Source: Penicillus capitatus
Lineage: Eukaryota > Plantae > Chlorophyta
Direction: 5' to 3'
Length of the DNA stretch: 64,000 nucleotides
Assembly (NCBI GenBank): GCA_965649825.1
Contig: OZ287695.1
Coordinates: 2,097,288 to 2,161,287, forward strand
Below the pieces are notes generated by a model. It had not been told where the DNA came from, searched no databases, and saw only the letters and a list, made by a program, of their open reading frames with translations. The position numbers and the translations under genes were made by a program. Shown piece by piece: positions 4,716 through 52,449 of the stretch. The number at the start of each line of letters is the position of its first letter. The stretch's first letter is position 1.

Positions 4716-4740
4716 GGGACCGGCCTGTTTTTCAGCAGGC
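4706..4740 (+). promoter_or_regulatory. -1 programmed ribosomal frameshift signal
   Basis: A_AAA_AAC heptamer (4706-4712) in correct phase right before the ORF1 TGA; GCCTGTT-TTTC-AGCAGGC stem-loop at 4723-4740; the -1 frame is stop-free from the heptamer into pol. Confidence 0.85.
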
Positions 4741-14700: not shown

Positions 14701-17700
14701 ACTAGAGGAGAGAATACGCAACATCGATTCCTATCTCAGGGAATCCAACCAGAGGTGCATAACGTTTGTTCTTTTAATGCCTCTGATATTTGTAGCCATT
14801 TAGCTTGCTCAAATGGCATCAGATCAAGGATGTCATTTTGGAACACTGTCCGCAGTTTCTACATTTTCTTGCAAGTGGCAGTTCCACTAGCGATGGCGAT
14901 TATGAATCGGAAACTCTGCCGCTCGCATGGACATCCTGGTGTCGTATGTATTCGAACTATCGAAAGCACGAAAGGCCGAATGCCGCGTTCATTCAAAATC
15001 GTCCCGTGGAGGTATTGCTGCAAATGGACGATTTTCATGAGATCTCTCCTGGCGAACACAAGACATTGTATGACTATTGGACTCAAGAAGCAAGAAAGGC
15101 AGCTATTGGTGGGGTCCAAAGACTAATGGGAGAATACGGACGATGCATAGAGGAATTTGCAGAATTAAGAAGCTCGTCTGTTCTGGACTGTTTGAGAACA
15201 GCATCCGTTGTGGGGACGACAACGACATATGTGGCAATACATCAAGAACTCCTGGCTGGACTCCGACCCAAGATTGTGATTCTCGAAGAGGCAGCTGAGG
15301 TTCTGGAAGCCCATGTCCTGACATCACTTTCCTTGAGCACTCAGCAATTGATTATGATCGGAGATCACGAGCAACTTCGCCCGAGATTGGACAACTTCTT
15401 ACTCCAAAAGCAATCGGAGTTAGGATTCAATCTCGATGTCTCCCTGTTCGAAAGGCTGATCACCGAGAACAATGTCAACCACGTCACGCTCCGAAGTCAG
15501 CGAAGAATGCGTCCGTCATTCTCGAGGTCCTTATGCAACTAATTTTGCCTCCGGATGATGTTGTCCTCTTAGGCTCCTCCGATCGACGATATACCCTGAC
15601 CTTCAGGATCATGTCTCTGTGACAGAATATCCGTCAGCCGTTCCTGGGATGGAAAAGACGTTGTTCTTTTTCGATCATGACCATGAAGAGGGTGGTATGG
15701 CAGATGACAGGTCCAAGAGCAACGTCTTCGAAGCTCAATTTGCCATCCACCTCGCCATCCACTTGTTAAAGCAGGGCTGCTTCGAACCAGGTTTGTTCCT
15801 GCATCACGGTTCGGTGATCGAATGTATCCTTAGACGACATTGCCATCGTGACTCCGTATCTGGGGCAGCTTCTGCAGCTCCGAAAGCACAGTAATGAGTT
15901 TTCTCTTCGAATGCGAATTGACGGCAAAGATGAGTTCTATCTTGGCGAACTTCTTGCCGATTACGTAGAAACTGGTGATTCATCCATTCTACTGTATCAG
16001 TATCGCAAGTCAGCTTCTTGTTCTTTCAGATAATCCAGAAAATCCTGGAGAAGACGTTCAAGAAGATCATGTCCATCGAGTTCCGAACATGATGAATGAG
16101 TCAAAACAGGCAAAGCGTTCCGAGCAGTCGTACGTGCGTCTGGCAACTGTCGACAACTTTCAAGTGAACTGCCATCCATCATTGCACTGAACAAAGTTAG
16201 TTCGGATCTCAGGGAGAGGAGGCAAGAATCGTCATACTGTCCCTCGTCAGGAATCAGAAAGAAGGACACATCGGGTTCATCGGAATCAAGAACAGGATCA
16301 GCGTTATGCTCTCGAGAGCAAAGGAAGGGATGTACATTCTTGGAAACTGTCAGTCACTCGAAGCCTACAGCAAGAACACCGTATGGAGGGATATCTTGCA
16401 TCTGATGAGAAACGAGGGTTGTGTTGGAACCGAGTTGAAGGTAGTTTGGCAGGCTCATCAATAACGGATCCTATTGTTCTCTTGTTTGAGTTGCAATGCC
16501 AAAACCATCCGGAGAACATAACGAAGGTTTCACACTGGAAGGACTTCGATCTTCTAGTCGCGGATGGAGGCTGCCGGGAACCTTGCGGCCAGCAGTTACC
16601 GTGTGGCCATATCTGCGGACGGTAATATCAGCTAAGGACGTGGGACCTTTCTTGATTGCCTGTCTTCCTGACAGGCGGTGCCATATGACGAACAGGGACC
16701 ACAAAGAAAACGATTGTGCTGTCCCCGTCAGTATCGAGTTTCCCTGTGGCCATGTCAAGACCGATGTTCCGTGCCGAGAGTACGTCTCTTATCCAGCTGC
16801 CTCGAATGACAGCGTGTCTCCGGCAGAGTGACCAATGCCAAAGAATTTCTCTGTGATGAGTACGTTGAAGTCAGAGTGGTGGGATGCCCCCATGGTCACA
16901 GATATCGTGTGAAATCCTCTCAGGCAGAGTGTTTCTCTGAGAACCCAAAAAACTGCACTGAGAGAGTCACTGTTCGTATGCCGATGTGTGGACACGAGAT
17001 CAGAGTGCCCTGTCACCAAGAGCCTACAGTCCTGGATAATCCAAGTAGATGTGCCGAAAGATGCCGCCGATTGATCGAAGGTTGCGGTCACAAGTGTAAA
17101 AGAAAATGCGGAGAGTGTCTTGGCCGAACGCTGGAGAAGAATCCTGATTTCGTACTGTCAGCGTCAAATGCTCAGTTGATTGATCACGGAGAGTGCAAAT
17201 CTCGTTGTGGCAAGACACTTCTGTGCGGCCACAAATGCGAAGCAAAGTGTCACCCAGGTGAGATGTCTGATCTCTAACCATTCTCAATACCATATGCAGA
17301 CCGTGAAGTCTGTTGGCCTTGTCAACAAGAATGCTCTATCGTCTGCGAGCATCGAAAACATGGCTGTCAGAAGAACTGCTCAGAGCCGTGTGTTTCCTGT
17401 GCCGAACCCTGTTCATGGAAGTGCGAGCATCAAGGAGAATGCGATCTGCCATGTGGGACACCATGCAACCGATTGCCATGCGACCGGCGTTGCGCCAAGA
17501 CACTTACATGTGGCTGTCGCTGTCCTTCTCTTTGCGGAGAGGAATGCCCCTCAACTGATTTTTGTCATGTGCATGGGCGCCCTAGAATCAAAAAAATGGT
17601 CCGTCATCCTTCTCATATGGACACTTTTAAGTTCCTCTGCGTTGCAGGAGGTGGATATGATCATATTCCGTAAGTATGGCGACCTCACGGATGAGGAACT

Positions 17701-24691: not shown

Positions 24692-27175
24692 ATGAGGAAG
24701 GTGGCTCTGGCGAAGGAGTGCTTTCCAAGCATCGTTCTTCGTAGACGTGCACAGCAGAGAGGAAATCTCCACGAGCAGCTTTCCAGCATGAAAGAGCATC
24801 GTCGAAACTGGCACCCGTTAGCGACATCAGACGATAGACGCTTCGGGGAACAGCCATCCGTCGATGCGATCCGCGAACCATTGGCCACGAGATAGACAGA
24901 ATAAAAATGTTGACATTATAGCGCATTCTGGCATTAGCTTGCCGCCATACTTGCACCCATGAAACGCGAAAGAAGCGATGCCGTCGTTTCTTCTGAGGAA
25001 ATAGGAGAGAGAAGAGAACGGGAAAGACAGATCCTGAACTTGCGCCATCACCTGGTGGCGACTTTGAGAGATCACGTCTCAGGAAATAGTGCCTCCTATC
25101 AAGAGTGCATCTGCTAACAGGCCACATGTATCTATCGCCAGATGTATGTTTGTGCAGATTGGTGCAGGAAGTCCATGTGCTGTTGCATCATGTCGCGACA
25201 CTAGACTGTCCAGCAGAGCAGCGCAAATTGCAGATTCTCTTGTCTTGTTTGGCAGGCTGCGCCTCAGAAATCGTTTCCAAACACCACAGTGCGCTCTGCA
25301 ACGCGATTCTCGACATTCCATTCATCACGCAGCCAAAGGTAGACCAGACACCACTATGCATCGTCAGATGTGTCCCTCTGGTCATGTCATCTGTAGACAG
25401 TGCAGAAGGCCTTGGTGGATGTCTTCCTGAACTGGATGCTGACAAACTGCTCGTTGATTCCGGGATGCTTGAGCTCATTGGCGATCTCATTGGTTCCATT
25501 CAAACCGTACAGCCCGATCAACGATCCATCGGAGAAGTGGACGATGCCTGAGCCATTGGCCGATACCCATCGTCTGATCTTGGATGTCGTCGATCAGGTG
25601 AAGCCAACACGAGACGCTGTCACATCGAAGGCTGGCCTGCTTAGGTCTACGGAATGATTCCGCACGTCGCGTCACAGTTTCTAGGATCGCTTTCCGCAAA
25701 GCAGCCGTTCTGGATGCGGCATTGCGAATCGCACTGTCTCTATCTCAGTGCGATTTTTCAAATCATGAAACGTCCGGTGGGGAAGAATTTTCAGGAGAAG
25801 CTCTGGTCCATGGTCGTTCATCACCTTCTGGATCTCGATGTCAATATCCATGCGAGCGATCTGGATCGCAGTTCTGACTTGGGCGGCGAAGTCGGTCTCT
25901 TTCATTGCGATCTCGGAGATGGATCAAAAGGATCTCCTGCATCCGATCAGCGCACACAGCAACTCGCAACATTGCTCACCGTTATGGACGCAATGATGGA
26001 GATCACGTTGGAGGAACTGGAAAACGGCGTGACGAAAGAGAATCGGGATCAAATGTGGAAGATCATGATGACGCTGTTCGATGCGTTGATGATCACGACA
26101 CACGAAGCGCAGTTTGTGCATTTCCTGATTTTCTACCTCGTTCAGAAGAATCCACTGGAATGGACAGCCTGTTTCATAAGGAGGTGTCTCATCAGAGTGG
26201 AAGATGTATGGACGGCTGCGCCCCTGCGGTCTGCCTACGCTTCCTACGTCGCCAGCTTTCTCTCAAGAGCAAAGTGTGCACCCCATGAGCTGCGGCTTCA
26301 GGGACTGGAAACACTCATGAAGACCTGCGAAGCCTATGCCAAAAAAGAATCCGAAAAGAAGCGAGAGCTCAAGAAATGGACACAGAATCGACTCGCCAAA
26401 GAGAAGACGGCATCTCTGAGTCCCCTTACACAACACGAAGTGCGTCATGGATGACACGTGCCTGTACCGAACAGACACTCTGTATGGCAGGTTTTCTACA
26501 CATGCATGCAATCGTTGATGTATCTGCTGTGTTATGTGACACCATGGCATCTCCGCAAGGGCAATAGCACTTACGGCGGCCACGTCTCCCATTTGGATCA
26601 GGTGCATCACTCAGTCATCGTGCCGTTTGCTGAGACGTTGTTTTTCAGTTAAAGACACTGATTCAAGGAAGACTGAGTCCACTGCTCTACCATCCTTTGG
26701 ATCCACTGAATCGCATTGACCCAGCCATTGCTGTTCAGTTTGCTGATCTCGTTGAGCAATTGAGCATCATCCGGTGTCGACATCTGATCGATATGGTGAC
26801 GATCTGACGATGCCACGACCAGCAAAGTTCATCTCTGTGTCTGCAGACTCGGTTGTATCAAGACAAGAGCAAACTTCGTGCGTCTTTTGCTTTCGATCCT
26901 TATTGTCTGGGTCGATCCAGGTCGTATCTGAAACTGGAAGAAACGTACATAACGTGGAACGCAGTGAAGCGCTGTCTGCCAGACCAAGACACCGTCATCG
27001 AAGGTCGATTTCCAAGTAAGACAACCATGTGCCCCGCTCCTCTGTCAAACGGCGTTTAGATGAGGAAGAATTGCTGGAAGGGTGTTCTTGGGAGGACGAT
27101 TTTTCTCCGGGACATTCCCTTTGCGCATCGGCGCCCATTCGGCGAGGCGATCCAACAGTTGACGGAATTCTTTGA
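24692..27175 (+). CDS. RRN3: RNA polymerase I initiation factor RRN3 (multi-exon)
   Basis: QFVHFLIFY, RSAYASYVASFLSRAK, VFYTCMQSLMYLLCY, FAFDPYCL motifs in a HEAT-like helical protein. Confidence 0.88.
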
Positions 27176-27262: not shown

Positions 27263-30200
27263 TCACGGCCGCCATTTCTGCGAAACCTTTGAGCTCTCGT
27301 CTCGCCGCAGAAACTCCGCGAGTCGTGGCGAATACTTCCCACTCTTCATTCTCTGTCTGGCCACCACATCATGGGCAGCCGTTTTCGAAGACAGATGCTT
27401 GCTGTGCTTTTCCCGGTTCTCCTTCACCACGCCACTCGCCCAATCGCCATACCGATTCAGTAATGTACTGTTCTCGTGGCGCAGCGTATCTGCCTTCTGT
27501 CTCATCACAGCATAAGCATCTTTGGCCGATTGGGCTTCGGAAACGGCACGTTCGATCGATAGATGTGAAGCAGAGAGATCCGATTCGAGGTGTTTGTTGC
27601 GCTCGACACTGCGCTCGAGATTCTTTTGGATGCATTTGCGGGAGGCCTCTTCGGCTTCCATAGCAGCGACGAGATCCTCGATCATTTTGCTTTTCTCTCC
27701 TAGTTTTAGCTTCAACTCAGCAACGGCGTTTTCTTTCTCTTGGAGATCTCGCCGTCTCTGCGTCTCATTCTCTCTCTTTTCTTCCATCGTCGACTGGAGT
27801 GTCATTTCTTTCTCGGCCACGAGGGCAGACAGTCGCGAGATCTCTTTCTTTATCACTGTGATTTTGTCCTTTGCCTCCACGAGCTGCTCCTGAGCACGTG
27901 CCGCTTCATCGTGACTCCGTTCTTTCTCAGCCGTCGACTCCGAGATCTAACACCGACAGAAACTGTCTCTATGCAAGCTCGAGATCCAAAGCACTTGGCG
28001 TTTGAATTTTTCTCTCTCTGTGTTATGCGATTCTTGCGTCGCCTTGAGCTGACCCGTGAGCGAACGTAATGTCTCGCTGAACTGATGGATCTGAGCATCC
28101 CTCTCGGCGATCTCCTCCGACGATCTCTCAAGAACACTCGTCTTTTCATCCTCACTGACCTCCAACTGCATCGCACCGCTTCAAATGATCATCTCTGAGC
28201 CACTCTATTTATCACCTTTTTTCTCAGATGTTTGATTTCTTCCCTGAGATGCACACATTGTAAGGCCTCTCGCTGCAAATCCTCTTCCATCTCCGTCATC
28301 CTCTCGCCATAAGATGCCGCGTTCTGTTTCAGGCGTTGTTCTTGGAAGGAAAGCTGATCCTACAGCAGACAACGCACGCGTGAGCTCGTTTGGCACATCG
28401 CGGTCATAGCTCAGTGGGAGAGCGTCAGACTGAAGATCTGAAGGCCCCGTGATCGATCCACGGTGACCGCATCCTTTTCGTCACGCACTTTTGTCCTTTT
28501 CAATTCCTCCTGCCCGTCTTCAACTTCTCGCGTCTGCTGTTTGCAACGCCCCTCCACCAAACTCAGTTCGTTCTTGAGATTCGACCATTTGGCATGGAGA
28601 GACTCCTTCTCTCGCAGCGTCTCCTCTTGCACGTCACTCAGAGCAGCGACCTCCGTCTGAACCTCCTTCAATGATTTCTTGAGGTTACGGATCTCAGCCA
28701 TATATGCTGTCTCCTTCTTCTAAACACAAACCGTAGAGCTGCACATCTATGGATCGACAGTGCAGATCTCGAAGTTATACTTTACTGTCATGTTTTATGC
28801 CTTCGAGCTTTGTCTTGGTCTCGGCAGACCATTCCGATTCCTTCCGCTTGTGATCGTGAACCGACATCTCGTGCTTCTCTTTGAGTCGGACGTGTTGTTT
28901 CAGCAAATCTCGATGCGCTTCTCTCTCGTTCTTTAAAGACTGTTTGAGATCCTTCGTCTCCTCTTCGAGATGGATCTTCTCTTTTTGCAGAGATGCTGTG
29001 AGAGATTGAGAGGCTTCGACTTCACTGGCCAATCGCTTGGCCTCACTCTTTTCCCCAGAAATGATGTGACATTCTTTTACGTTGGATGCTATTGTACCTG
29101 ATGTTTGGCAACGAGGAGACGTTCTTGGCTCAGAAAATCGTGGACGGTGTCGATCTCTTCCTCCATGACGTTTCTTCGCTCTTCGCTCGATTCCAGTTCC
29201 CGTTGAAGACGGCAGCATCGTGCCTCACTCTCTTTGCTTCGTTCTAAACAGTGTGATGCAGCTTCATTTTAAGTAAGAGGCATCTTCTCACACCTTTTTC
29301 CTGAGCTTCTCCGGACTGTCGTGCCTGGCACTCTTTTGTTAATTGTTGTGCTTTGAGTGTCAGTGCATTGACAGTGCCTTCCAAATACGTGCTTCGATTG
29401 CTGAGCTGCTCACACTCTTTCTTGATTTCGTGAAGCCTGAATCAAACTCTCTTCACAGAAGGTGATGCAAATTGGCGCCGACTTCTGTGTGCGTTCCTTA
29501 AGCATCGCGCCGCTTTCTGCCAGCTGTTCCGTGAGATGTCGACATGTGACATGCTGCCGCTGCATCTCCTCTGCTTGTCGCGTTGCCTGTTCTCTGATCT
29601 GATCACATTCTTTTTCGACCAAGACCAAACGATCGGTCTTCGCTTTATCATCTGCCTCGAGCCTCAGCCTCAGACAATGCTCATCGCGAAGCCTGTAACG
29701 ATATGCACATCTTTCTCTGCGACGGCAAGAATCCGGTTTGCAGCTGTAGACCTTCTTTGCAGTTCCTTGAGACGGTCATCGTGTGTCTTCAGTGCCGCTC
29801 TCAGCGCCGTCTGTCCCTTCTCCATTCAAACACGCTGACCGTTCGTTTGCGATGATCACCTCCTCTTCTGCTTTTGCAGAGAGATCGTTTGTCAACGTCT
29901 GCAGATCCTGTTCAAACCGTGCTCTTTCCTGCATCACACAGAGCCTCTCTCACGATGAGCGTCCAAATGCCTGCAATGGTCGAGAGACCGTTTTTTGATC
30001 CGTTTTCAGTCGAAGGAGCTCTTTTGCCAATGCCTCGTTCGCCGTTACCAGATCCTGCATCATTAGAGATCCCATCTCCTGTATGCCGCACACCAGAGCC
30101 TACTGAAATCGTATTGTCTTTGTAAGCATTCCATCGATTTTGCAGGTCCTTATCAAAGGCTCGCTGTCCTCCTTTTAACAGATAGTTTTTTGGATGGAAG

Positions 30201-32030: not shown

Positions 32031-34244
32031 ATGCTAGACGAGCGAGAAGGAGAACGATCGCTGTTGGAAGAGACCACGCCATCTCAGCGTCGCCATGGCA
32101 TGCGTGTTACTTTCTCTGTGCGCCTTGCCTCGACGTCTTTTCACTCAAGTCGACATTCGCTTTGCAGAATCTCGAGTACTTTCTTCCTTCCAACATCAAA
32201 CGTGGAGAAACGGCCACTGTCCTGAAGAAGATGTCCGGATATTTCAACCCGAATGAAATGACAGCTCTGGTCTGACATGATCTCACCGGAGACAACAACA
32301 CGACGTGAGGACTGCTTTGTGCTAGATGGGCCCTAGCGGATGCGGAAAATCGATTCTGATGGATGTGTTGGCCGGAAGACGTACCCGAGGAACACTGCAG
32401 GGAGCGATTCGATATGATGGACGAACACCGTCACAAGGATTCCTCCACTGGTGTACGGGATATGTCGAGCAGTTCAGCACCTTGATTGAGAACTTGACCG
32501 TGTTCGAGATGCTCATGTACACAGCAGAACTGAAAGTAAAACACCGACGGACCTCGGCAGCATTTGATCCGTCCTTGATTCAGCGCCCGTTGGATGAATC
32601 CTTGTCGAGCAAAGAACAGGCCGTGATGGATTTGATCGACCGTTTGGCACTGACATCGTGTAAAAACAGCCGAATCGGAGATCCGCACTTGGATCGGGGC
32701 ATCTCCGGAGGAGAGGTCACTCGATGCTACACAATAGGGGTCGCCTAGAGAGTGTGTATGGCGGGTAGGGAAAGAGAGTCAACATCGGCATTGGATTGAT
32801 CACGAACCCCCGAGTGCTGTACATAGACGAACCTGTTTCTGGACTCGATTCCTACACAGCAAATGAGGTGAGGCCATGGAATGGAAAAGAGAAGAGAGTT
32901 GGAACGTTTGCTGCACACAGGTGACGGAACTGATCCATAGTCTCGCCTGCGATGGAACCACCGTCTGTGCCACCCTGCATTCCCCAACGCCCTTCACCTT
33001 TCGCCTCTTTGATCGCATTCTTCTGCTCGTTCAAGGAACCATGGTCTTCTTCGGCGGACGAGGTGTCACATCACACGCCGCCAATGAGAGAGGCTGCGAT
33101 CGATGTGAATGTAGAGGAGATCGTTGGGTACTTTGAGAGTCTGGCTGTCGGGTCACGTCATCCCTCCCAGAGTGTTGCTGAATGGTTGACGGAGATCATC
33201 GTCAAGGCAGACCAGGAAGACACAACGCCTGTACTCATTGAAGGCTATCGGCATTCTCAGCTACGTACACAGACAGAAAGCCATACCACGATGTCCTCCC
33301 CCTCTGCCGAGATGCGAGAAGAGAATGGACAGATGGTGCAAGAGAATATCTACAAGCAGAAACCCTTCTGGTTTTCTCTGAAGATACTGATCCGCTACCG
33401 TGCTGTCAAAAATCTCTCGAGTCTTTCTTTCTGGTTGACTCGGAGCATCGACAAGAGCGTCATCGTCCTTCTGCTCTGTACACTCTACTACAGTCTGGGA
33501 GATAACATCACGCCCAACAACTACTTCGAGCTTTCGGCATTGATGTTCATCTGGTCAACATTCTCAGCAACGGGCGCTCTGGTTTATGTCCCTCGATTGG
33601 TGGTCGAACGATGGGTGTTCTATCGAGAGCAGCGCGATGGACTGTATCCTGTGCTCTCGTATTTTCTCATCAAGATCCTCGAAGAGATGATGGTGGCTGT
33701 GGTGCTGTCCGTGCTCTTCTGCTACATTCTGTGGTCTTGCATCCATCTACAGGGCAGTCTCCTACGATTCATACTCACCTTCTTTGGCATGTTTGCCTCC
33801 AGCATTCTACTGTCCTTATTCTTTGGGGCAATTGCGCCCAACATGGACATTGCTAATGCTCTATTCCCCTGCTATATGATGACCCTTATGTTCTATGCTG
33901 GCTATCTGCTGTTGCCTGACGACATACCGAACTACTTGGTCTGGTATTCAAAACTGGATTTCCTTAAGTACTGCTACGGTGCGCTGATGGCAAACCAATT
34001 CAAAAGCGATGTCAAACTGGAAGGAGCAGCAATCTACTTCACACGTAAGCATCTCTGCCATCTCGAATGGTCCATCCACTAAGTGTGATTGTGTGTCTAT
34101 CCAGCGAGGGATTTTCTGGACAACCTTGGTCTGGGCGATTTCGACGAAGATTGGTACGTCGGAATTCTCTATCTCTTTTCGACCGGCTTCGGTATCCTTG
34201 CATACTCGGCCATGCGTTTCGTTAGATACGAGCGCAAGAAATGA
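32031..34244 (+). CDS. ABCG half-transporter (NBD-TMD)
   Basis: Walker A GPSGCGKS, signature ISGGE, DEPVSGLDS, H-loop LHSP, ABC2 membrane domain with ERWVFYREQRDGLY. Confidence 0.95.
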
Positions 34245-38926: not shown

Positions 38927-41900
38927 TCACTGTGTCTTGCATTTCAGTTTATCTGAAAAATCGAACGCTTCTCTCCACAGAGCCTCCACTGCATTCTCCA
39001 CCGTAGCGTTGTCCAAGAATGGCTCCGTCGAAGGCACGATCCGAACTTCACTGACATCTCGGATATTCGAGTATCGACCCTGCGCCAGACGACGCGTATA
39101 CTGCTTGGCCTGTCGAATGACCAGTTGGTAAGGAACGCCAAATCGCATCTTGTGCTTTGGATATTTGAATATCGTGTAATGCTCCATGTAATCGACATCT
39201 AGATTCTCACTCTTTATGTACAGCTCATTATTCTCCCGAATGCCAATGGCATCGATAAAATCTTTTGCCAGTGCATGATCCTCGAGCTTCGTCACCTCAC
39301 TCACCTGCCAATCAAAATAAAATATCTCCGGGGCGGATGAAGATAGCAAACCTGTGTTTTGAGCATGAATCGAATATCGGATTCGCGTCCCTCCACTTCG
39401 TCATGGTGACAGACACATTGTCGTTTGACATCGCTGACGATCCAGCGAATCGGCGCCGTTTCGATGCCGACAAATTTCAGATCGGCATCGTAGCGCGCCG
39501 TCACGACACCCGTTCCTGTCTGCGCCACCACTTTGACGCCTTCTTCCTTATCGCCTTTGTACTGGTCTTCGGGAATATCTGTTAACGAGTTTATCAATCT
39601 CTGTTTCAGAAAGTCGCGTTCTTCATCATCGAAGAAGACAGAAGCGACAAACGACGTGGAAATGAATCCATCATTGGCACGTTCTCCTCTAGGCACACGG
39701 CGAAAGTGACCTGAATCGAACATCGGATCCAAGAAACGTGATTTTCTTCGTTCCAGAGCCTTGAGCAAATCTTCGGTGGTCAGATGCGTGGCATCTTCCA
39801 CAAAAGACTGGGGAGGACTCACAACGTAGCTTCGGCCAAACTTGACTTGAATCTCGCATGGACCGTTGACTTCTGGCGAGTACTGTCTCTGAAAGTGGGC
39901 CAGTTGACGTCTGAAATGCTGTCGGAACTGATCAAAGTTGTCGGTATTGGTAGGATCCACCGCCGAAGTGGCAGGACGATCACGCAAGCGAACGACATAG
40001 AGCCTCTTGTAATCATGCTGTGGATACTTGTAGCCTAAGTAAGGCTCGAGGCGAATGGAGGCATGGGTACCAACTGCCGTTTCCACTAAAAGATTGTGCG
40101 CACCTGTCACATCTTTTGTGCCCCTAGATACACGAAACACCGTCACCTCTTCACCTCTTCAGCCCTATCTTACCGCACGCGCAGTGTCCGGCCCGTTTTT
40201 TGTTGTTCATCAGCCTGTGCATTGAGCATCTCGATCTGTTTCTCTAACAGATAGAGCTCTGCCTCCGTTCCGACGCCTTTGACGATCTTTCCCGGATTCA
40301 AAGCGCTCATTCGAGACTGGACATCGACCCATGCTCCAGATCTCTGATGCAGCATCCTGGTGAGGCCATCCTCATCGCCAACCACGAGACGCGACGCCTC
40401 GAGTTTGATAAAGAAAAGACGTTCGATGGGAACTTTGCTGAGCAAGACGGATGCGTTGACGTGGAGAGACAGGCGATGGGAGGCTTTCTCCATTTCGGCC
40501 GAGAGCAGAGTCAGCATATCAGTCCTTGCTTCATCATTCCATCTCTCCACCTTTAAGGCCTGTAAAAATGCCACAGACATGATCACGTCCCTAATTAGCT
40601 GCTGTGGCAGACTTGTGAGAGTTCTGGATGGAGATCGGCTGGAATCTGAGCCGTCCCCTGTTTCATGAAGGTACACAGGAGACGTCCAACTCGACCAGAC
40701 TCTCCTTCCCACGGCTGATCGCTGATCTCGTCGTTTCGATTGGCTGTTAGGTTTTGATGCAAGCTCTTCCATTCGTTGTCCGTGCCAAAGCAGTCGTTGT
40801 GCAGCGGATCTTCAAAAAATCTCTTGGCTGCTTCCAAGAACTGCCGTGGAGGGATTGGATGCAATTCGCCAGCCTTGAGACAATGATCGATGAACATCAG
40901 TGGCACCAAGTAGTCTGGCAGGAAGAAAACACGACCGCCCACCAATCCTGTCGCCATCATCCATGTGAACAGGATTCTGAGCGCAGGGAAGAGCCACTGG
41001 TGCTTGAAGAAGTACTTCTTGATCACAATCCACTTAACGACTTCGGCTGGATTGGCAGAGAGCCGAGCCTTTGTCTTGGGCAGCCTCTTGAAGACACGAA
41101 CTCTGAGGTGACATTGCTCAGTGTTTAGGTTTTGTGCCGCGAAAAGAGAAGAGCATTCGGATTTCACCCTGTCCAACCGCGTCAACTGATCCTCTTTGCT
41201 CAGGGCGATGTTTTCTGAATCATACACCTGCCGTCTCTTTTTCATGACCAGAATGCACACTTCTCCTCTCTGATCATCGAACAGCAGGAGATGACTGGCA
41301 CCAAAAAGCACGCAGAGAGCAACGCGCTGACAGGTCTCTCCCAGAAAACGTGCCAACATGATATGATGTTCGTAGGCTTTATACAGTTTGCTACACAGCC
41401 ACACATGACGTTCCTCAGGAGAGAGAAAGACAGACGACTTACTCAATCGTCCCGTTGAAAATTTCTTTCACGCTGTCCGAGATTTCGGAGTAAATTGAAC
41501 GCTGCGGTCTCTGTTTGGATGCTGCGTCGCTATAGATCTCGGCCAGAAGATCCTTCAAGATCCAAGGAAAGCTCAAAAAATGTTGCATCTCGTTGCCTAT
41601 GTGCACGGATCGCATATCTCTTCGGCAAAAGGCATACGACTTACCCACAGAATACTGATCTCCGTAACAAGAGGCATAGGCAGCATAGTACCAAGCAGAA
41701 GCTTTCTTCTTCTCCTCGACTCTGCCATCTGCCTCATCCAGTCGCGAGTCGGTGAAAAAGATCGCTTTGTATTTCGTCTTGATCTTCTCCAACATAAACT
41801 TCACGTTCTTCCTCACGTCATCCAGTTCGCTTTCGAGTCTCGGGTGGTACGTCGAGATGACACCCGACCACATCTCAGCCTCCGTCTCAATGCCGTACAT

Positions 41901-44900
41901 GCGCATGATCGTCAGGATCTCTTGGTTGTACTGTTTGAAGATCCGGTGTGCCTCAGTGATGTAGTCTTTATATCCCTCAACCTTGAAGGCCTCGTCTGGA
42001 TGTGGTCGGCTGCTCTGCTCAGCCGTTGCTGGATCGGTGGTGGCCATCATGTACTTGTTGCATTCGCGAAACATCTGCCCCAGGACATTCATGGACGGAT
42101 ACGACGGTTTGTCGACTTTCATCATGAAATCTGGATACTTAGTGAGTTCAGATTTGATATGCGATGGAAGATGTGTCCAGCTGCCAGTCTTTGGAGCATC
42201 GACGGCCTTTGCATGCAGCTCGGAAAGATCCAAACAGATTTCGCTCTCGAGTCCTCGCTGATCTGCCAGAGCCTTGTGCGTGTTGTCGATCATACCTAAC
42301 GTATCGTTCTCGATAAAAGCGCAGATGTAATCGGCAATGTGGCGCAGCCCGATCTGATCGGGTCTCTCCTCCTGCTTTGCTCCAGTGTAATCCATGGGCT
42401 CCTTGATCGGGATCGTTGGCAAGAGGCGCATATCCCAGATGCAATGATACTGATCTCCATCTAAATCCGATCCGGATAGTTCATTGGGATGCGGTCGCGG
42501 TCCTTTCTGAGGAAAAACGACACAGTCGACAAGATGACGCAGCTGTGGAATATCTTTTCCTTCAAGGGTGCGAACATCTCCTGGATGAATGCACGGGTTC
42601 TTCATGATGACGATCGTGGAGGTAATGACACGGCGAGCGACACCCGGTTTGTCCAGGTCTTCCGAAATCTGGATGAAAACCTGACCGCTCTCTAGCACCC
42701 CTTCTTCATCCATCACCCCAATCAACACACGGCCCTTATCTTCATCCAGACGGACTCGGGATCGCTCTCTCATGTCTTGCATCTGAAATCTACGCCAGAT
42801 GAAACGGGATGCATCGTAAGAGGAGGACGTTGCGATGTGAAGGATCGGACCGATAGCTCGCTTTCATGATGTTGCGAAAGAATGGATCGGAAGTGAACTG
42901 GAATCGCACTCGTTGAAGCCGATTGATCTCTCTGGACACTGTTGCCTGAAGAGCCTTCACTGCCGCATCCTCCTCCACAAACATCTTCCCCATCTGGACA
43001 ATCTTGTTCTTCAACAGGTCCATGAAGACATCGTCTCCCACTCCCACGTTGCTCAGCAACATGATCACCTGTATTGCCAGAAACGAAGCTGCATAGAAGC
43101 TGATGTGACGGGTTTTTACCTGTTGATTGAGATGCAGAGGAAGCGGACGTGAGAATTCGAGCACTTCGATACCTTTGCTGTCGGAAGGATACTTCAGCAT
43201 GCTATGTCGCACCACCAGATCAGAGGTATAGCCCTTTCTTCTGAAGAAATCATCATCCCAGACAGACACCATACCTTTGCATCCGCCGATTCTGATCTGA
43301 AAGGCAGACGGGATCGACGAATGCTCCAAGCACTGTTTCTCCTTCACCTAATACCAACAGTCATCGGCCGGCGGTGCAGCTCAGGGCAGTTTACTTTCAA
43401 CGCCAGAGAGGCTGAGATCAATCCAACACCATCGGAGAAACAATAGTCGCCAGCTTCCACATCCGATTCCGTATAGTAGTGCGCCACAGAGACGGTGTGT
43501 ACGGATGTTGAAAAAGCCAAACCCAGTCGCGACATATAACGTGGCACTTGCGTAATCCCTGAAGATCAGACATACCAGCCGTTATGACAACACACGTGAA
43601 AAAGCAACGCACGCGTGAGATCTCCAATTCCGTCGCGTATCTTTTCGGCGATGCAGCATCCATCATCTCGGATGAAATAAGAAGAATGCGCGCGTATCTG
43701 ACTGTTCGATGCTGCCAAGTAGACATACTGATGTGGTCCGATCTTTATCCCATTCATCAAGATGTCGCGGATTCGATTGGTGATATGCGGCAGATCTCCA
43801 TAAAGACTCGTCAGATTGTCGCAGTTCTCATCGCGAATGCCAACGCGAATGAAGATCTCTGCATTGTACTCACGCACGATGCGATTCGTCTAGCAACACA
43901 CTCATCACACAGCGGCCACGATTTGAAGCCTCTGTCCTACCTGGATCAGATCTGGTTCGTAGAAACGTAGCGAGGTGGGCGTGATGATAATTCTCTTCAT
44001 GTACGCGTGATTTGAACTTGGTGGCCTGATCTCTGTATCAGGGATGGCGGATTTCCATGCACGTTCCATAAACTGAACGGGATCACAGAAGAGCTTCTTG
44101 GACATCACTCTTGCAAGCTCGTATATCGTTCGAATCGCTTCGTTCTCTTGCATGGAGTTCAGAATTTGATAGAATCGATCATCCATACGTTCCATAACGA
44201 ATCCAGCCGAGGAAGTGAGACAACGCATGGCATAGTGCACTTCGGGATTCTGGCTGTGGGCAGAGCACTTGGTAAGATCCAGCCCCTCTTCGTGTCCGAG
44301 AAAGGGCGCTGTACCGAAGGTGGTCTGCATGGAGGTGAAGTAGACGGTCACTCCAGAGGATTCCAGCAGCTTCAACACTTCACGTACTCGGTGATCGATG
44401 AGATTGTGCTGCGTAGGAGCTCGTGGATTCGGTATTTCCAGTTTATAAGTGAAGCAGTTGGCAAAAACGTGACAGCTGTTTGGCTCGCCATACCCATAGA
44501 CACGCTGCGACGTCTCTCTGCCTTCGTTATCGGACTGCGACATTCGACTCAAACGGGGTGTTTGCGAAAAAGTGAGATAAAGAGTGAGAACAGAATCTTC
44601 TGTATTGGCGTTCTCCTGAAAATCCACCACGGCAAAATCGCGCAGATCTGCAAAGGATGCTTCTATTTGCAGCTCGTCGTTCACCGTGATGACAATTCGG
44701 TCGAATCCTCGTTCCAATCGCAGACTGCTGGCTTGGCCCAGTCGCATCTGCTGAACAAACGTTCGCTGCCATTTGAGCGATCCCACGAACGTCTGATGCA
44801 AACTCAGCCTCAACGCTGTCGACCTCGGAAAGTAGCTCCGTCGATTCAGCAAACTCGTCCAGATATTGAACAGCTCGGAATGGAAGATGGGCGACGTGAA

Positions 44901-47892
44901 CAGACCCAGGATGCTCTTCTCAAAGCGATGGGCGTTTTCTCGATCGCTGTTTTCGTTGAGCGTCAGCAAAGCCTCCGGAAAATAGTGCGTGCCGACGGCG
45001 TTCTCAATCTTCAGCTCTTTGTCGATCCATTCGTGGATCTGGACTTCGGGATGGGTGATTTCGATCGCCTTTTTGATATGGTCTCTGGCACGTTGATACA
45101 TTTTGTCGTCCTGAACGAAGATGGCGAAGCGCACGGCGACTTCGACCTTCTCCGATTCGTCCTCGTCGAGAAATGGAAGCTCTTCTTGACTGGCATCCAC
45201 ATCGACTTGCTTCATGATATCCAGCATCTCCTGCAGTTCTGCTTCTGAGATTCCGTTCGCCTGTGGCCCTGCCTCCTCTTTCTGAATGATCCTCCTTCCG
45301 GTATCTTCCTCCAGATCCAGTGGCACCTTGCTGTGGGATGTCATCTGATCGAAATGATACCTGTTCTTCATCATCAGCTGGATCACATCGGCCTGTGTCT
45401 GCATACAGCTCAGGTATAACTGCTGCCTGTTCTTCTCGGCCTCGCTCTTGCATATGATATAGAATTTGCCATCGGCTGCTCGACAGGCGCGTCCTCGACT
45501 CTGAATAAACTGCCGCAGGTTTTCAGGCGCTTTCATACGGAGCACCATATTGCAGGAAGGCACATCGAGACCTTCTTCCAGAATGGTCGTGGTGACCAGC
45601 AGTTTCGTCTGCCCACGTCTGAAATCGTTCAGAATCTCTTGTTGCTCTTCGAGGCTCAGTCCATCCCCACAAATACCTCTGCCCACAATGACTTGAGGAT
45701 TGAGCGCCGTCTGGATAAGATTCAGCTGCGCAAAACAGCTACAGAGTTTGCGTGCCGTTCGACGCATATCCACGAACACCAGAATCCGCGTATCTTTCCT
45801 GTGCTCTTCATAGTGCTCTTGGATCATTTCGATCATTCTCTTGCACTTGTTGGAAAGGAGATGGTGTTTATAGACATCGCTTTTGGACTCCCGTTGGACC
45901 TTCTGAAAAAGACTCGCGTAGAGAGGCTGACCGTCAAAACTCTTCTTGTAACTAAACACACAAAACGTGTTGCCATGTAGAAGTGATCTTGTCTCGTAGA
46001 GGATGGTATGTACCCATACAGAGCTTCTTTCTTTCTTTGCTCCTGTCCTGGTGCCGGATCTTCAATACTGTAGAACACCTTCTTCAGCTGTTGCATCGCC
46101 ACGTCATGACCGATCACATTGTTGACCTCATGAACTGCCAAGATCTGATTCATGTGATCTCTCATCGCATAGCTACGCAAAGAGAGAGCATCCATCGCTC
46201 ATGGCCCTGACTGTTGTCAGAGACGCACATACCCATAGTAGATATCCTCTGTGCGGCTACGGAATCGCTCCTTGTCGCGAGCTTCGTCCAACTGACCTTC
46301 AATTTTTCTCAGTTTTCCACGAAGTTTGTTGGTATCGACCTCGCGATCGTCTCCCGTCAAGAGACCCTCCAACGAACCAAACAGCGGGGCAATATCTATC
46401 AGACGATGCTGTGTCGCTCGAGTCACTTCACGCATGTAGTCATCCAACTGTTGCTTGAACTCAAACTCTTTCTGACCAGGATCGACAATGAACGCCCAAT
46501 CATGCGTATGTCGCATGCCGTTGTCATACGGATCGTTTTTGCAAGGGAAGCAAGGATGGCAATGTAGCCGCATACCCATCTCCCTAATGTCTTTCTCAAC
46601 TGACTGCGCTGTTGCCGTGCTCTCTGCATTGTCCAGAGGAGATGCCGTCATTCCCATGATTAGAGGTCTCGAGGACAGCTGGACATTTTTATCGAGCACT
46701 CGGCCAAGGAGCTCTGCATAGGGACTGTCTCCCTTTGTCTCGTGCGCTTCGTCCAAAACCAAACAGCAAAGATCCTCGACCCTTACCGTGCTGATCTCCA
46801 TCATTGCGTTCATACAGGCGCACGTACTGACTAGTATATCGTACTGAAATTCGCCAATGATCTGCACCGAGTGTGTCAGGTCGCTTGGAAAACAGTCATT
46901 GCGAGAGATCGCACTTTGAGATTCTTCCTTCTCTGGTCCGGATGCATCTGGCCGAAGACGGTGACGACTTTGGCAGCAGAGAGTTCGGTCTTGAGGACAT
47001 GGGATTGCTGCCCGACGAGATGATTGGTGTTGACCACAAAGGCTGCCACTTTGTGTGGATTGATATGTAGCATCGCTCTCAAGACGCCAGCCGCCACCAG
47101 TGTCTTGCCTGATCCTGTTGGCAGACATAGCAGACTGTTCTGCTTGAGGCAGAAAGTCAACATCTCCATCTGCAAGACGCCATCTCACACAAATGCGAGC
47201 GTCACCTGTCACATCACAGACTTGATAATTGCGCATCTTCGTTGCTGTGAGATGCTTCAATGTGTCATCGGATGTCCTGTCGACATCGACGAGAAACGTT
47301 GGATGAATAGGTCGACCATCACGGCTGTAAAACTTCCGGCCTGCCTAAACGTCACATCACTGGCTCTAAATGATCATTCGCATGCCATGACAGACAGACC
47401 CGTCTCAAAAAGTCCTTCTGCGAGATACGGGATACACCACATTCTACCAGTGCCGGCAGCACTTCTTTCCACTTGTCCTCGTATCTCTCCAGGCCATTCG
47501 GAAACTCGAACACGACGTATTTTGGACGGATCTCGTCGTAAGCATTGGCCGTGATGGTATCCGCTAGACAGACGCCGATCTTTCCTTCGCAGTTCCTGAC
47601 GACGCGCATTGGCATCTGACGTTTAGTAGGAGCGAGCATACCTGCAGTGTAGCTTCCAACCAAAATCGCCCTTTCCCGTTTCGTGGTTTTCGCGTCGTTC
47701 GGTCGTTTTGCTCCGCTTGAGTGCGATCTGTATTGGCAAGAGGCATCAATCAGGCTTTGCAAAAAGACGTCTCGATGTTGAGGGCACTTCGGGAACGACG
47801 ACGAGTTTGTTTTCGTTTCCCAAAATCGCGAGCTGCTCAAACGTGTACAGCTCTGCGCGACACTGGCGACATTTGATCTTGCCAGGCGACAT
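38927..47892 (-). CDS. RDR: Multidomain RdRP: RLR-CTD, DExD/H helicase, RDR, NTase-like, KH-like, CYTH/TTM-like (about 17 exons)
   Basis: Consecutive ORF pieces join in phase across about 45-62 nt GT-AG introns. RNYQ, LPTGSGKT (47101-47124), LDEAH (46742-46753), MTASP, EEGLDVPSC, QSRGRA; SDGVG, QIRIGGCKG, KNPCIHPGD, SGSDLDGD (DLDGD at 42453-42467). Confidence 0.9.
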
Positions 47893-49419
47893 GAGTGAAG
47901 CGACACAGACGAAGACGAACGCACAAACACCTTAAGACACTCAAGAGGTGTCGCTGTCACGGTACAGTACCAAGCGGATGCCGGACAAAAGAACGGCCGC
48001 CTGTTCAATCGCTGATGGCGACCCTGTCCCATCGCCCTCTCGCTGGACAAGCGACCATCCACCAACCTCGCAGCGTCAACGGACGGAGAGACCGGTCGCA
48101 TTGCGAGGATCAGGAATGAATTGCACACGTCCGATGTTACACTTCGTTCGATGGAGTGATGATGTGACACATCACACTATGCCATTTTCTTCAGCGACAA
48201 GTGACATCGACCATCGCCTTTGCCTAGCCACTGATCTCGGCGATACGTCACTCGATGATATTCCATGCCTTCAAACCTTGACAGAGATTTTCGCCGTGAC
48301 CTCGATGCAAAGAGTGAGATAACGTGTTACCATGATTTATCTTGGGAGCAGCAACATACTGCTGTCAGGGATGGGACGCCCTCTTCTTCAAAAACGTCTT
48401 GATATAGACACGTTCGAACCTCCAACGTACAGCAGCTAGAGAACGGTCACTCATTTGCTGTCAGGCGAAAGAGTGAGACAGAAACGCACTTTTTATCCGT
48501 TGAGATATGAGATGTCCAGGCAGCGCCCATGTCCATCTGTAGACTGCGCATCATACGACTCTGCATCACACACAAGTGAGAATGACACCATTCCGTATCG
48601 CCTGTTGTTGTCACCAGCACAAGGAAGGGACTGGTGCCGAGAAGTCTGTGTCGAATATACAGTGTCGAGTGCAAGAGGATTCTACGCAACATCCGTACAG
48701 CGTTTCTCACTCTTTTGAAAGAGTGACCTGAGCAAAGGAGCACCCGAAGATCCCATCTGTCCAGACAGGATCTTTAAGACACTCTAGCGCGATCGCAACA
48801 TTCCATATGACTCGCAGAAAAGTGTGAGAAAACCTGTTCATTCTTGATCCAAGGGAACAGCACTTTGTAACTCGCCATCACCAAACATGCCATCTACAAC
48901 ATTCCTGACGCGATTCTCACTCTTTATCGTCTCACACTTGAAGGTGTGTCTGCGAAGGTCCATCTCGGATGCGATGTGCATGTCGTATGTGATAGTCCTG
49001 GTAAGCTTTCTCAATGTATAGGTGAATGCGCTCCGTCTGATCTTGCAGTACATGATACTCACTGTCACACTTTTCCATCATCTCACTCTTTATTTCAGCA
49101 GATCGCCAACTTGCATCGCGACCGGATACCTCGAATCCACCAGCGTCGATTCTGTCTCTGCAGCCATGGTCGCAACTTTGGGAAATACAGATCCAGCCAG
49201 TGCGACGACGCTTCATCTGTCGAACGGCCGTTTCCTGACGCCGATGACGGTATACATCGCAGTGCCGTATGGCAGCGCGCATCTCTGTCGGCAGGTCGAC
49301 GATGGGAGAAACGCAGATGTCGCCATGCCCCACGGATCATCATCATTTGCCAAGATCTGTTGCGTTTTGCACGTCGAGTTGATTCGTCTCTGCATCCAAC
49401 CCTCGTCGCTACCATCCTC

Positions 49420-50184
49420 ATGGCGCAGCTTCTCACGTCGTCTTTTTCTTGTGCCGGTCGTCGCGTCGCGACGTCGTCTCTCAAGACAACCCACAACTAC
49501 CGCCGCTCGGCATTCAACGGCAAGGCCCTGCGCAGTACATCCCTCCTCCGACGCGCCGCCGAACGCGGTCGGCTCTCCGTCAATGCCGGGTGCGGGGAGC
49601 ATTCGCCTCAAGTGGGAAACGTTGCGCCAGATTTCGCCGCCCAGGCTGTCTTCGATCAAGAATTCGTCGAGACGACACTCTCTCAGTACCGCGGAAAATA
49701 CGTCGTTCTCTTCTTCTACCCTCTGGATTTCACCTTCGTCTGTCCGACTGAGATCACTGCCTTCTCAGATCGCTACTCAGAATTCTCTGCCCTCAATGCC
49801 GAAGTCCTGGGCGTCTCTGTCGATTCACAGTTCAGCCATCTGGCTTGGATCCAGACAGATCGCAAAGAAGGGGGTTTGGGCGATTTGGCGTATCCCTTGG
49901 TGGCCGATCTCACCAAAGAGATTTCCAAATCCTACCAAGTCCTAACCGAAGAAGGCGTTGCCCTCCGTGGCCTCTTCATCATCGACAAAGAAGGCATCGT
50001 TCAGCATGCCACCATTAACAACCTTGCATTCGGTCGCAGTGTGGACGAGACCTTACGTACACTCCAGGCCATTCAATACGTACAAGAGAATCCAGACGAA
50101 GTGTGCCCGGCTGGATGGAAACCGGGTGACAAGACAATGAAACCGACGCCGAAGGAATCGAAAGAGTTCTTTGCTGCTGTGTAG
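49420..50184 (+). CDS. Chloroplast 2-Cys peroxiredoxin (BAS1-like), intronless
   Basis: [15 protein letters not shown] and EVCPAGW motifs; transit-peptide-like N-terminus from ATG 49420. Confidence 0.97.
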
Positions 50185-50245
50185 AGGGAACGGTGATTTT
50201 TGTAAGATCCGTCGATTGTGTCGTACCGTTTCGTTGGAAGGCACT

Positions 50246-52449
50246 ATGAGGCGTTTACTTGTATACGGCACGTTGCTCATGGCCTCGCTCTGTACGGCCT
50301 CGTCTCCCGAAGACGAACCGTCCGTCGCGAAGCGGTGCGAAGACATTGGCAAAGCGCCAAGAGCGGAGCGATGTCGTTTGGTCCGCAGTCTCTGCTCAGA
50401 GGAGAGTCGCAAAGGGACACTGTCACTGGACTATCTCTCAGCTTACTACTGTCACATCGATGGAAATGGCTACCGTGTGCAATTGCTGTTCTGGACGATG
50501 CTGTGTTTTGTGGGAGCCATCCTGTTTTCTCTCCTGGGCGATACGGCTGAGAAATATTTTAGCCCTGCGCTGACGCAGATTTGCCAACAGGTGCCTAAGA
50601 TGCGACCGAGATTTGCAGGAGTGACCGTTCTGGCATTTGCAAATGGCGCTCCGGATCTTTCTGCGACGATCAATGCGATCAAAACGTGCAAATTTAATCT
50701 TTCCTTGGGAGCGCTGACGGGTGCTGGCATGTTTGTCAACTGTTTTGTGGCGGGATGGATTATTCTGATCTCAGGAGGGGCCAGATGTCGAGGGGCAACG
50801 ATCCGCGATGTGACCACGTATTTTCTGACGATCTTTGGTGTCTTGATGGCATTGCTGGTGCATCGCATGGGCATTACGGTCATCGTCTTGGCCTTTCTCC
50901 TTTACGGTGGCTTTGTTGCCATTGTCTTCGGTGCCGATGAATGGCACGAACAGGGACGCCCCGATTTCTGGTCCAAGCCCATCGGCCGCATCGCCTCCAG
51001 TTTTCGATACGGTGAAACGATGGAGGATGCATGGATGACATCGACGACAGGACCTGTCTGGGCGACCTTCGATGACGACGGCGAGCAGCCCTCTGCCATC
51101 GCTTCCGAACAATTGCTGTTGACAGCGACCCGTGATGAGGAAGAACTCATGAGACGACATCTGCCGACCGTATGGGCACAGCTCTCACCCAAGGAGTATC
51201 GTCAACAGGCTCTGGCCGAGATGGCGGGATCGGATGACGATCTGTACGACTACCCACTTGATGACAGACTGATGGCGGAAGCCACGTCAGAAGGGCCTTC
51301 TCAGATGGAGAACCTTCCAGATGATTCATCTCCTCAGCCTCTTGGCGCCGACGTCATGCCTTTTGAAACGGAACACCCTTCGGAGACCGTACCATGCACA
51401 GGAGGTGCGTCAGGCGATCATCTGTCGCTGTCACAGACAGCGTGTGCGCACAGGTGTGTTTGCACAGTATCCATGGCTTATGCCTATGTGGGCGACGCTT
51501 TTGATGGACGACAAGCCGGACAGGGATAGCATGATTTTGACAAAGATCATTCTGGCAGTGCGTCTGCCGTTCCTGACATTGCAACGGGCAACGATTCCTC
51601 TGACCAGTCAAGAACACTTTTCCAATTTCTGGCTTGTCACCTCCATTGCCCTATCACCCTTCATAGTCCTCATTTACTTTAACTTCTCTGGCTGGCTCAG
51701 CTTCTTCCTGGCTACTCTCCTGGGAATAGTCCTCGCTGGAGCCATCTACTTTGCCACGAAAGGTGATTGCTCTTTCCTGTGTGGATCGATGAGGTCTCCC
51801 TAAATGTGTAGGATCGTCCAGACCACCTGTCTGGTCATTTGGGACGTCGTGGCCAATAGGCGCCTCGCTGATTGCCCTGTACGGATTGGCAATTGGTATC
51901 TTTTGGATCGATATCCTCGCGGGAGAGCTCGTCGATCTGCTGTACTGTGCCGGAACCGTGACCGGAATACCGGAAGCCGTATTGGGACTGACGGTCCTGG
52001 CATGGGGCAATTCGATTGGAGACTTCTTTACGAACAAAACCATCGCCAAAGCCGGCAAAGGAAACATGGCATTGACTGCCTGCTATGCCGGACCCGTCTT
52101 TAACATGCTGATGGGACTGGGACTGGGTTTCATCTCATTCTTTGCCACACAGCATCGGTCCTCCGCCTCCCTTCATGCCGGACCCCAAGTCACACATTTC
52201 TCATACTTCTCACAAAGTGTGAGCGGCTTTCTGTATGACTAGGTGATTCTGGGCTGTATCTGTCTGCTCCTTCATGCAGCCGCCGTGGTCATCATCGGCA
52301 TTCGAAAAGGATTCCGACTTCCCAGCCGTTTCGGATATTTCTCTATGGGTGTTTATCTTGTGTACTTATGCCTTGCTGTTTCGCTTCAGTTCCTCATCGG
52401 AGAGCGAGAAAACGATGATGCCGCTCAATGCTCGGATCTTTCATCCTAA
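50246..52449 (+). CDS. Cation/Ca2+ exchanger (CCX/NCLX family)
   Basis: alpha1 GVTVLAFANGAPD; alpha2 GLTVLAWGNSIGDFFTN, ACYAGPVFN; signal peptide. Confidence 0.93.

Follow-up and report, generated by a model that had tools for sequence, protein, structure and literature searches.

A helicase-RdRP gene of Penicillus capitatus with a predicted inactive nucleotidyltransferase domain in its C-terminal extension

Organization of the helicase-RdRP gene

A 64,000-nucleotide stretch of DNA from the green alga Penicillus capitatus (GenBank assembly GCA_965649825.1, contig OZ287695.1, positions 2,097,288 to 2,161,287 of the forward strand; hereafter the window, to which all coordinates below refer) was analysed with respect to a large gene for a cellular RNA-dependent RNA polymerase (RdRP). 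The window, with a GC content of approximately 50%, represents eukaryotic nuclear DNA in which short open reading frame (ORF) blocks occur in changing frames. The gene is located on the minus strand at 38927-47907 and consists of at least 13 exons and approximately 2,800 codons, its 5' limit being approximate. It very probably encodes, in a single polypeptide, a RIG-I/Dicer-like helicase, an RdRP, an RdRP head, a catalytically dead terminal nucleotidyltransferase (TENT), a KH domain, and a C-terminal beta-rich module. The central claim of this study, that a catalytically dead TENT is fused to the RdRP, is held with high confidence. An earlier note, made by inspection of the sequence, had proposed a degenerate Cid1-like domain at this place.

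All introns of the gene are of the GT-AG type and are 47 to 62 nt long. When the ORF fragments of the window were used in tblastn searches, its coding blocks were found to be conserved from approximately 47.9 kb to 38.93 kb in two loci of ENA metagenome assemblies, L001 and L002. The N-lobe of the helicase was assigned to 46226-47184 through matches to the Pfam families DEAD and ResIII, both scoring under Pfam's cut-offs. Its motif I (PTGSGKT, with GSGKT at 47115-47101) and motif II (DEAH, 46753-46742) are intact. The C-lobe, which is of the RIG-I/Dicer type, lies at 45477-45833 (PF00271 Helicase_C, 1.1e-19). The best sequence matches of the helicase in PDB were an ancestral Dicer helicase, LGP2, MDA5, Dicer-2, RIG-I, and Dicer-related helicases (DRH).

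The RdRP catalytic domain (PF05183) occupies 42060-43347, where it was detected by Pfam at 6.6e-75 and 1.5e-27, and is split by an intron at 42850-42790. The catalytic motif DLDGD is intact at 42467-42453. The neck and head of the polymerase follow at 41443-42059, and the equivalent ORFs of L001, L002, and two other loci (L003 and L004) matched PF26253 RdRP_head. The last exon of the head ends with the residues SVKEIFNGTI(E/D) and is followed by a 52-nt phase 2 intron (41391-41442, GTAAGT...TGTGTAG).

Four further minus-strand exons, B to E, encode a C-terminal extension of 771 residues, and the spliced frame contains no stop codon until its end. Exon B (40613-41390), whose frame is open and free of stops, provides 259 whole codons from 41389 (KLYKAY...LHPELSQ) and encodes the TENT-like domain. 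Both of the peptides on which the earlier proposal was based are located in this one minus-strand exon (41390-40613, in an ORF block at 40595-41446). The interval proposed for the domain, 40790-41390, was correct in that it began at the true exon start; its other end, however, fell approximately 59 codons before the end of the exon and of the domain at 40613. The relatives with an intact active site, as well as the KH domain and the module of approximately 380 residues behind the TENT-like domain, had no place in that proposal. A 53-nt phase 0 intron (40560-40612) separates exon B from exon C (40174-40559), which encodes two linker helices and then the KH domain. Exon D (39352-40123) and exon E (38930-39304) are parted by a 47-nt intron, and the stop codon is at 38929-38927.

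The positions and phases of the introns in L001 and L002 are the same as those in the window at the junction between the RdRP head and exon B and at the next three junctions. In addition, the terminal stop is common to the window gene, L001, and L002. Two other relatives carry these parts in uninterrupted ORFs. P0009 is a 1355-codon ORF (L006) that extends from the RdRP catalytic domain through the C-terminal module, and P0010 is a 963-codon ORF on a genomic contig (L005) that contains the RdRP head, the TENT-like domain, the KH domain, and the C-terminal module. Because these ORFs are continuous, the fusion is independent of the splice model. The placement of the domain behind a cellular RdRP, as had been suggested, was therefore borne out by a conserved in-frame intron and by continuous ORFs. 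A separate downstream gene or a pseudogene was considered and rejected, since the frame is open and the ratio of nonsynonymous to synonymous substitution rates (dN/dS, see below) is well below 1.

A 124-codon ORF is present antisense to exon B (40754-41128, plus strand). It is unsupported and most likely results from the composition of the coding strand.

Fold, active site, and relatives of the TENT domain

An AlphaFold2 model of exons B and C, which was generated from a 14-row alignment, had a predicted local distance difference test score (pLDDT) of 85.7 and a predicted template modelling score (pTM) of 0.88. When this model was searched against PDB with Foldseek, all of the 50 best matches were TENTs, with E values of 1.5e-6 to 1.4e-3 and a probability of 1.00. 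They included GLD-2 (1.5e-6), CutA, URT1, Cid1, TUT1, MEAT1, TbTUT4, TUT7, and mtPAP, and the sequence identity between the model and the TENT structures was 11-15%. A family profile of 13 sequences (A7) gave seven matches in PDB, six of which were TENTs, including GLD-2 (E 0.0016 and 0.0036), TbTUT4 (0.0029), RET1, and RET2. Furthermore, two relatives passed the cut-off (27 bits) of Pfam PF22600, 'MTPAP-like central palm domain', namely P0013 (1.9e-8, 34.9 bits) and P0015 (3.7e-10, 40.5 bits). The resemblance to TENTs that had been seen by eye thus exceeds chance, and a nucleotidyltransferase (NTase) fold was matched in profile as well as structure searches. In the predicted structure, the domain has the two-domain TENT fold, with a Pol-beta-like palm at approximately residues 1-112 and a PAP-associated central domain at approximately residues 113-259. 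An NTase fold of the OAS/cGAS/DZF type was rejected because it was absent from the 50 best Foldseek matches.

The residues of the active site were read from alignment A4. The hG[GS] turn is kept, and F29-G30-A31-S32 (G30-A31-S32 at 41302-41294) aligns with the G-S of GLD-2 and TbTUT4. On the other hand, the aspartates of the DxD motif are replaced by E43 (41263-41261) and C45 (41257-41255). The profile alignments set these two residues on the aspartates of GLD-2 and TbTUT4, with the family sequence g-e-v-s-i opposite SDMDL of GLD-2 and SDVDF of TbTUT4, so that the earlier observation of GEVCI in the place of DxD was upheld. The position of the third catalytic aspartate is taken by R109 (41065-41063), and the family sequence r-a-e-i-t lies opposite the strand carrying this aspartate. 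The triphosphate-binding lysine of the 'vKxW' helix corresponds by alignment to T142 (40966-40964). Since all three aspartates and the lysine are replaced, two-metal catalysis is impossible in the window protein as aligned. The TENT domain of the window is catalytically degenerate at the sequence level and is predicted to be inactive.

The same sites were compared among the relatives. The turn, the DxD motif, the third aspartate, and the lysine of the window (G30-A31-S32, E43-V44-C45, R109, and T142) have the same residues, G-A-S, E-V-C, R, and T, in its orthologue (L007/L008) and in L002, and read G-A-S, E-V-R, R, and T in L001. Catalytic degeneracy was therefore found in the orthologue and in L001 and L002 as well. 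The corresponding residues are G-M-T, E-V-N, E, and S in P0009; G-L-S, V-E-L, E, and E in P0010; and G-I-S, D-V-S, S, and A in P0017. P0006 and P0007 have D-V-S and the third D, with G-A-S and G-P-S in the turn and I and S in place of the lysine, respectively. The full catalytic set (G-S, DxD, D, and K) was present only in P0013 and P0015, which read G-S-S, D-L-D, D, and K; P0011 also keeps the lysine. Judging from these residues, the active site has been lost by degrees in this family, starting from one that was apparently competent.

A profile built from exon B of the window and the L001 and L002 ORFs was run with HMMER against 1.84 billion representative proteins in an exhaustive scan. It yielded ten proteins, all of which are unnamed and come from metagenome or raw-read assemblies, and P0013 was reached at E 2.9e-5. 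Word-indexed homologue searches detected close relatives or ORF fragments only, and the exhaustive scan was needed for the distant members. A metagenome locus search with alignment A6 gave matches to 267 patterns and no true relative. P0013 (L003, 6805-7992) and P0015 (L004, 8498-9727) are located directly after ORFs with RdRP and RdRP_head domains in their contigs, and relatives of this type share the order RdRP-TENT-KH. They are candidates for active fusions of an RdRP with a tailing enzyme. The introns at L003 and L004 are longer than those of the window gene, and the source organism is therefore probably more distant.

L007 and L008 represent the orthologue of the window gene and retain the peroxiredoxin neighbour described below, and they differ from each other by two synonymous changes in exon B; they are probably haplotypes or the result of a recent duplication. 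In contrast, L001 and L002, which are 65-68% identical to the window over exon B, are of a second paralogue type with GDT1 and Band_7 neighbours. Because sample ERZ26696514 holds both gene types (L007/L008 and L002), the gene has been duplicated in that genome, and the site is dead in both copies. The dN/dS values for exon B were 0.14 between the window and L007 (90% identical), 0.18-0.24 between the window and loci of the L001/L002 type, 0.29 between the paralogues L007 and L002 of one sample, and 0.32 between L001 and L002. These values indicate that the dead domain is under purifying selection and is maintained.

Downstream modules and neighbouring genes

The segment of exon C at approximately 40427-40194 (minus strand; model residues 304-381) shows the topology beta-alpha-alpha-beta-beta-alpha according to DSSP. 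A profile of this segment (A9) gave 19 matches, 18 of which were KH proteins. The best were IGF2BP1/2 at 4.4e-4, and others were Nova-1, hnRNP K, PCBP1/2, FBP, and NusA. The Pfam KH models did not match exon C. Based on its topology and profile matches, the segment was classified as a KH type I domain with a degenerate GXXG loop, which reads GDEDG (40379-40365; G-D-E-D at 40379-40368). The loops of the other family sequences in A9 are G-N-E-D, G-D-E-D, G-K-E-D, G-N-E-L, G-A-V-K, and G-A-E-K, and no canonical GXXG was found among the KH family members examined. Canonical binding of RNA by this domain is therefore doubtful. The G-D-E-D loop resembles the GDDG mutants that are used experimentally to abolish RNA binding by KH domains.

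The C-terminal module encoded by exons D and E (38930-40123, minus strand) is beta-rich and consists of 382 amino acids. Its AlphaFold2 model was poor (pLDDT 47.4). In a Foldseek search with this low-confidence model, the six best matches were RESC1 and RESC2 (4.3e-7 to 1.9e-3), and the next were mostly the RNA triphosphatases Pct1 and Cet1 and the CYTH protein YgiF. One relative matched PF25477, 'RESC1/2 CYTH-like', below the threshold (E 0.016, 14.5 bits against a cut-off of 27). Profiles of exons D and E gave a single Lpg1083 match and artefacts from designed armadillo repeats in PDB, and thus no support for a tunnel fold. The metal-binding motif ExExK was not found; the candidate for strand 1, chosen by eye, is I-R-L-E-P-Y, with one conserved glutamate only. 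We regard the assignment of this module to a RESC1/2-like triphosphate-tunnel (CYTH/TTM) fold as tentative, with about even chances of being correct. The products of RdRPs start with a 5'-triphosphate, and a triphosphate tunnel fused to an RdRP is for that reason an attractive idea.

The best PDB sequence matches of the TENT module include kinetoplastid terminal uridylyltransferases (TUTases), namely TbTUT4 and two enzymes of editing, RET1 and RET2. The kinetoplastid guide RNA machinery contains the same two types of modules, TUTases and RESC1/2, either by coincidence or by common ancestry. The PDB entries of the kinetoplastid matches to the TENT and C-terminal modules are 5hzd/5ido, 2b4v, 2ikf, 8cdp, and 8fn6.

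Next to the RdRP gene, on its 5' side and in divergent orientation, is the gene for a 1-Cys peroxiredoxin (AhpC-TSA and 1-cysPrx_C, 48946-50184, plus strand), an arrangement that L007/L008 share. The next ORF on the plus strand is of the Na/Ca-exchanger type (50171-51529). On the other side of the gene, the plus strand carries a fragment of an AAA_11 helicase (Upf1-like, superfamily 1; 14805-15542), RRN3 (25654-26454), tRNA-Phe(GAA) (28400-28471), and an ABC-2 transporter membrane domain (32952-34082). A search of the window with Rfam detected nothing beyond the one tRNA. A Ty3/gypsy-type long terminal repeat retroelement at 1314-7708 (plus strand) has two long ORFs with an aspartyl protease, a reverse transcriptase, and an integrase (zinc-binding and core domains), and it looks largely intact.

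Possible roles and comparison with known systems

In fission yeast, ciliates, and nematodes, the RdRPs of RNA silencing have a helicase and a Cid1-family NTase as partners, and the contribution of the NTase is still unclear (PMC4066745). It was reasonable to connect the exon B domain, as had been done earlier, with Cid12 and Rdn1/2, which are NTase partners of RdRPs, and the presence of a helicase in the same polypeptide mirrors the RNA-directed RNA polymerase complex (RDRC) (PMC4066745). The ancestor of the window gene probably encoded an RdRP to which an active tailing enzyme was fused in cis, which would amount to a one-polypeptide RDRC comparable to Rdp1-Hrr1-Cid12 or Rdr1-Rdn1/2. The existence of P0013 and P0015, which are fused and have an intact site, indicates that the dead form was derived from a fused, active-looking TENT. 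In the lineage of the window, the tailing chemistry would have been lost and the TENT module kept as a non-catalytic part. The former active-site cleft and the adjacent KH domain might then hold or position the 3' end of an RNA, either template or product, for the polymerase. We put forward this putative RNA-end-holding role of the TENT and KH domains as the most likely one, although with less than even chances. The pseudo-TENT may read tailed 3' ends, as had been proposed earlier; the results neither favour nor contradict this idea, and they fit a purely structural role just as well. Should the C-terminal module prove to be a triphosphate tunnel, the product of the RdRP would be held there by its 5'-triphosphate end. 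The protein might in that case be a one-polypeptide machine for the amplification of RNA interference (RNAi), whose TENT and, probably, triphosphatase-like module are pseudoenzymes that clamp both ends of an RNA, the 3' end in the cleft and the 5'-triphosphate in the tunnel. This larger proposal is speculative and, taken as a whole, unlikely. If it were true, the use of the same two module types by the kinetoplastid guide RNA machinery would hint at a common origin for the ways in which RdRP systems and RNA editing deal with RNA ends.

Several results weigh against the interpretation of exon B as a dead TENT that acts on RNA ends. The window exon alone did not match any Pfam family at E<=1, and phmmer against PDB gave only the TUTase RET1, over the central domain, at E 1.3-1.5. 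This match was lost when a three-sequence profile was used, and one spurious match to L35 appeared instead. Since the searches with the window exon were uninformative, the resemblance seen by eye was a weak lead that required profiles and structure. The TM-scores of the Foldseek matches were moderate (0.43-0.55, rmsd approximately 7 A), although the query included the extra KH domain and the angles between domains may differ. The catalytic site was mapped by sequence and profile alignments and not by residue-level structural superposition. The lack of a Pfam match on the window sequence, together with the fact that the homologues are all unnamed ORFs, would be expected if the resemblance were fortuitous or the annotation wrong, that is, if the segment had no NTase fold or belonged to a separate or decaying gene outside the RdRP protein. 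Such an error is scarcely credible, since the PDB profile matches, the Pfam matches above threshold in relatives, and the AlphaFold2 model with its Foldseek matches are three independent lines that agree, and since the open frame, the conserved in-frame introns, the low dN/dS values (0.14-0.32), and the continuous ORFs of the relatives all speak for a part of the RdRP protein. It is also very improbable that the domain is a still-active NTase that uses unconventional residues, such as E43 with other acidic side chains. E43 does place a carboxylate in the position of the first aspartate, the G-x-S turn is kept, and relatives with the full site exist. However, in the window gene as well as in its orthologue and the two L001/L002-type loci, the second metal ligand has become Cys or Arg and the third Arg, and threonine stands in place of the triphosphate-binding lysine. 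Moreover, a single substitution of these aspartates abolishes the activity of Rdn1/2 and HESO1 (PMC4066745).

A pseudoenzyme with a purely architectural function has to be considered more seriously, and we judge it about as likely as the RNA-end-holding role. The domain would bind no RNA end and would serve as a rigid scaffold or dimerisation module, like the NTase-like DZF domains of NF45/NF90, and would hold the KH and C-terminal modules against the RdRP or recruit partner proteins. The loss of all catalytic and triphosphate-binding residues agrees with this explanation, and purifying selection fits any structural role. Hydrophobic residues predominate in its best-conserved stretch (KWIVIKKYFFKHQWLFP...LPDYLVPLMFIDHCLK), which may represent the core and not a ligand site. 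In addition, the adjoining KH domain lacks the GXXG loop, and the acidic GDED in its place argues against canonical KH-RNA binding. On the other hand, no DZF, OAS, or Mab21 protein was among the 50 best fold matches, all of which are RNA-acting TENTs, and the surroundings of the domain are devoted to RNA handling throughout (helicase, RdRP, KH, and a possible triphosphate tunnel).

Among known proteins, RrpA, RrpB, and RrpC of Dictyostelium likewise combine an N-terminal helicase and a cellular RdRP in one large protein, whereas no TENT, KH, or tunnel-like extension was reported for them in the paper (PMC3661229). The domain of the window has the two-domain fold, the hG[GS] turn, and the helices of the central domain in common with Cid1, GLD-2, TUT4, TUT7, URT1, and CutA. 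TENTs of the Cid1/GLD-2 type keep the DxD...D residues and the lysine, which are replaced in the window domain, and are separated from it by an identity of 11-15%; the window sequence falls under the Pfam threshold. An inactive TENT fold is also known from human TUT4 and TUT7, in which the N-terminal NTase is kept as a Lin28-interacting module beside the active polymerase. The analogy is partial, because the inactive domain of TUT4 and TUT7 has a second TENT as its partner and binds Lin28 with pre-let-7, whereas the partner of the window pseudo-TENT is an RdRP. For the C-terminal module, the relevant comparison is with trypanosome RESC1 and RESC2 (GAP1/2), which are inactive RNA-triphosphatase-like tunnels, RESC2 binding the 5'-triphosphate of guide RNA (PMC10201420). 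These proteins are without two of the three metal-binding glutamates and are end-binders, not enzymes (PMC10201420). They were the best fold matches of the window module, as obtained from a model with a pLDDT of 47, and binding of 5'-triphosphate RNA by that module is conjectural.

In the literature searched, whose coverage did not extend to one relevant RNAi review, neither an RdRP-TENT fusion nor its pseudoenzyme form nor a KH and tunnel-like tail was found to be described. Helicase-RdRP fusions and separate RdRP and NTase subunits are already known; their combination in a single chain was not found described. With this gene, the few known TENT pseudoenzymes gain a further example. The series from intact to degenerate sites within one family shows that the NTase module is worth keeping without catalysis, a point that can be tested with regard to the mechanism of RDRC. 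The three-part fusion constitutes 'Rosetta-stone' evidence for an ancient and physically intimate partnership, and structural studies of how RdRP, helicase, and NTase are coupled could use it as a single-chain target.

The closest parallel is RDRC itself, in which the same trio of RdRP, helicase, and Cid1-family NTase occurs, as in Rdp1-Hrr1-Cid12 of S. pombe, Rdr1-Rdn1/Rdn2 of Tetrahymena, and the proposed Rdr-Cid pairs of Paramecium (PMC4066745). Rdn1/2 need their catalytic aspartates to act as NTases (PMC4066745), whereas the NTase of the window is predicted to be dead and those of P0013 and P0015 look active. In RDRC the parts are separate subunits; in the window protein they are domains of one chain, to which KH and C-terminal modules have been added. 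Hrr1 is a helicase of a type other than the RIG-I/Dicer-like helicase of the window.

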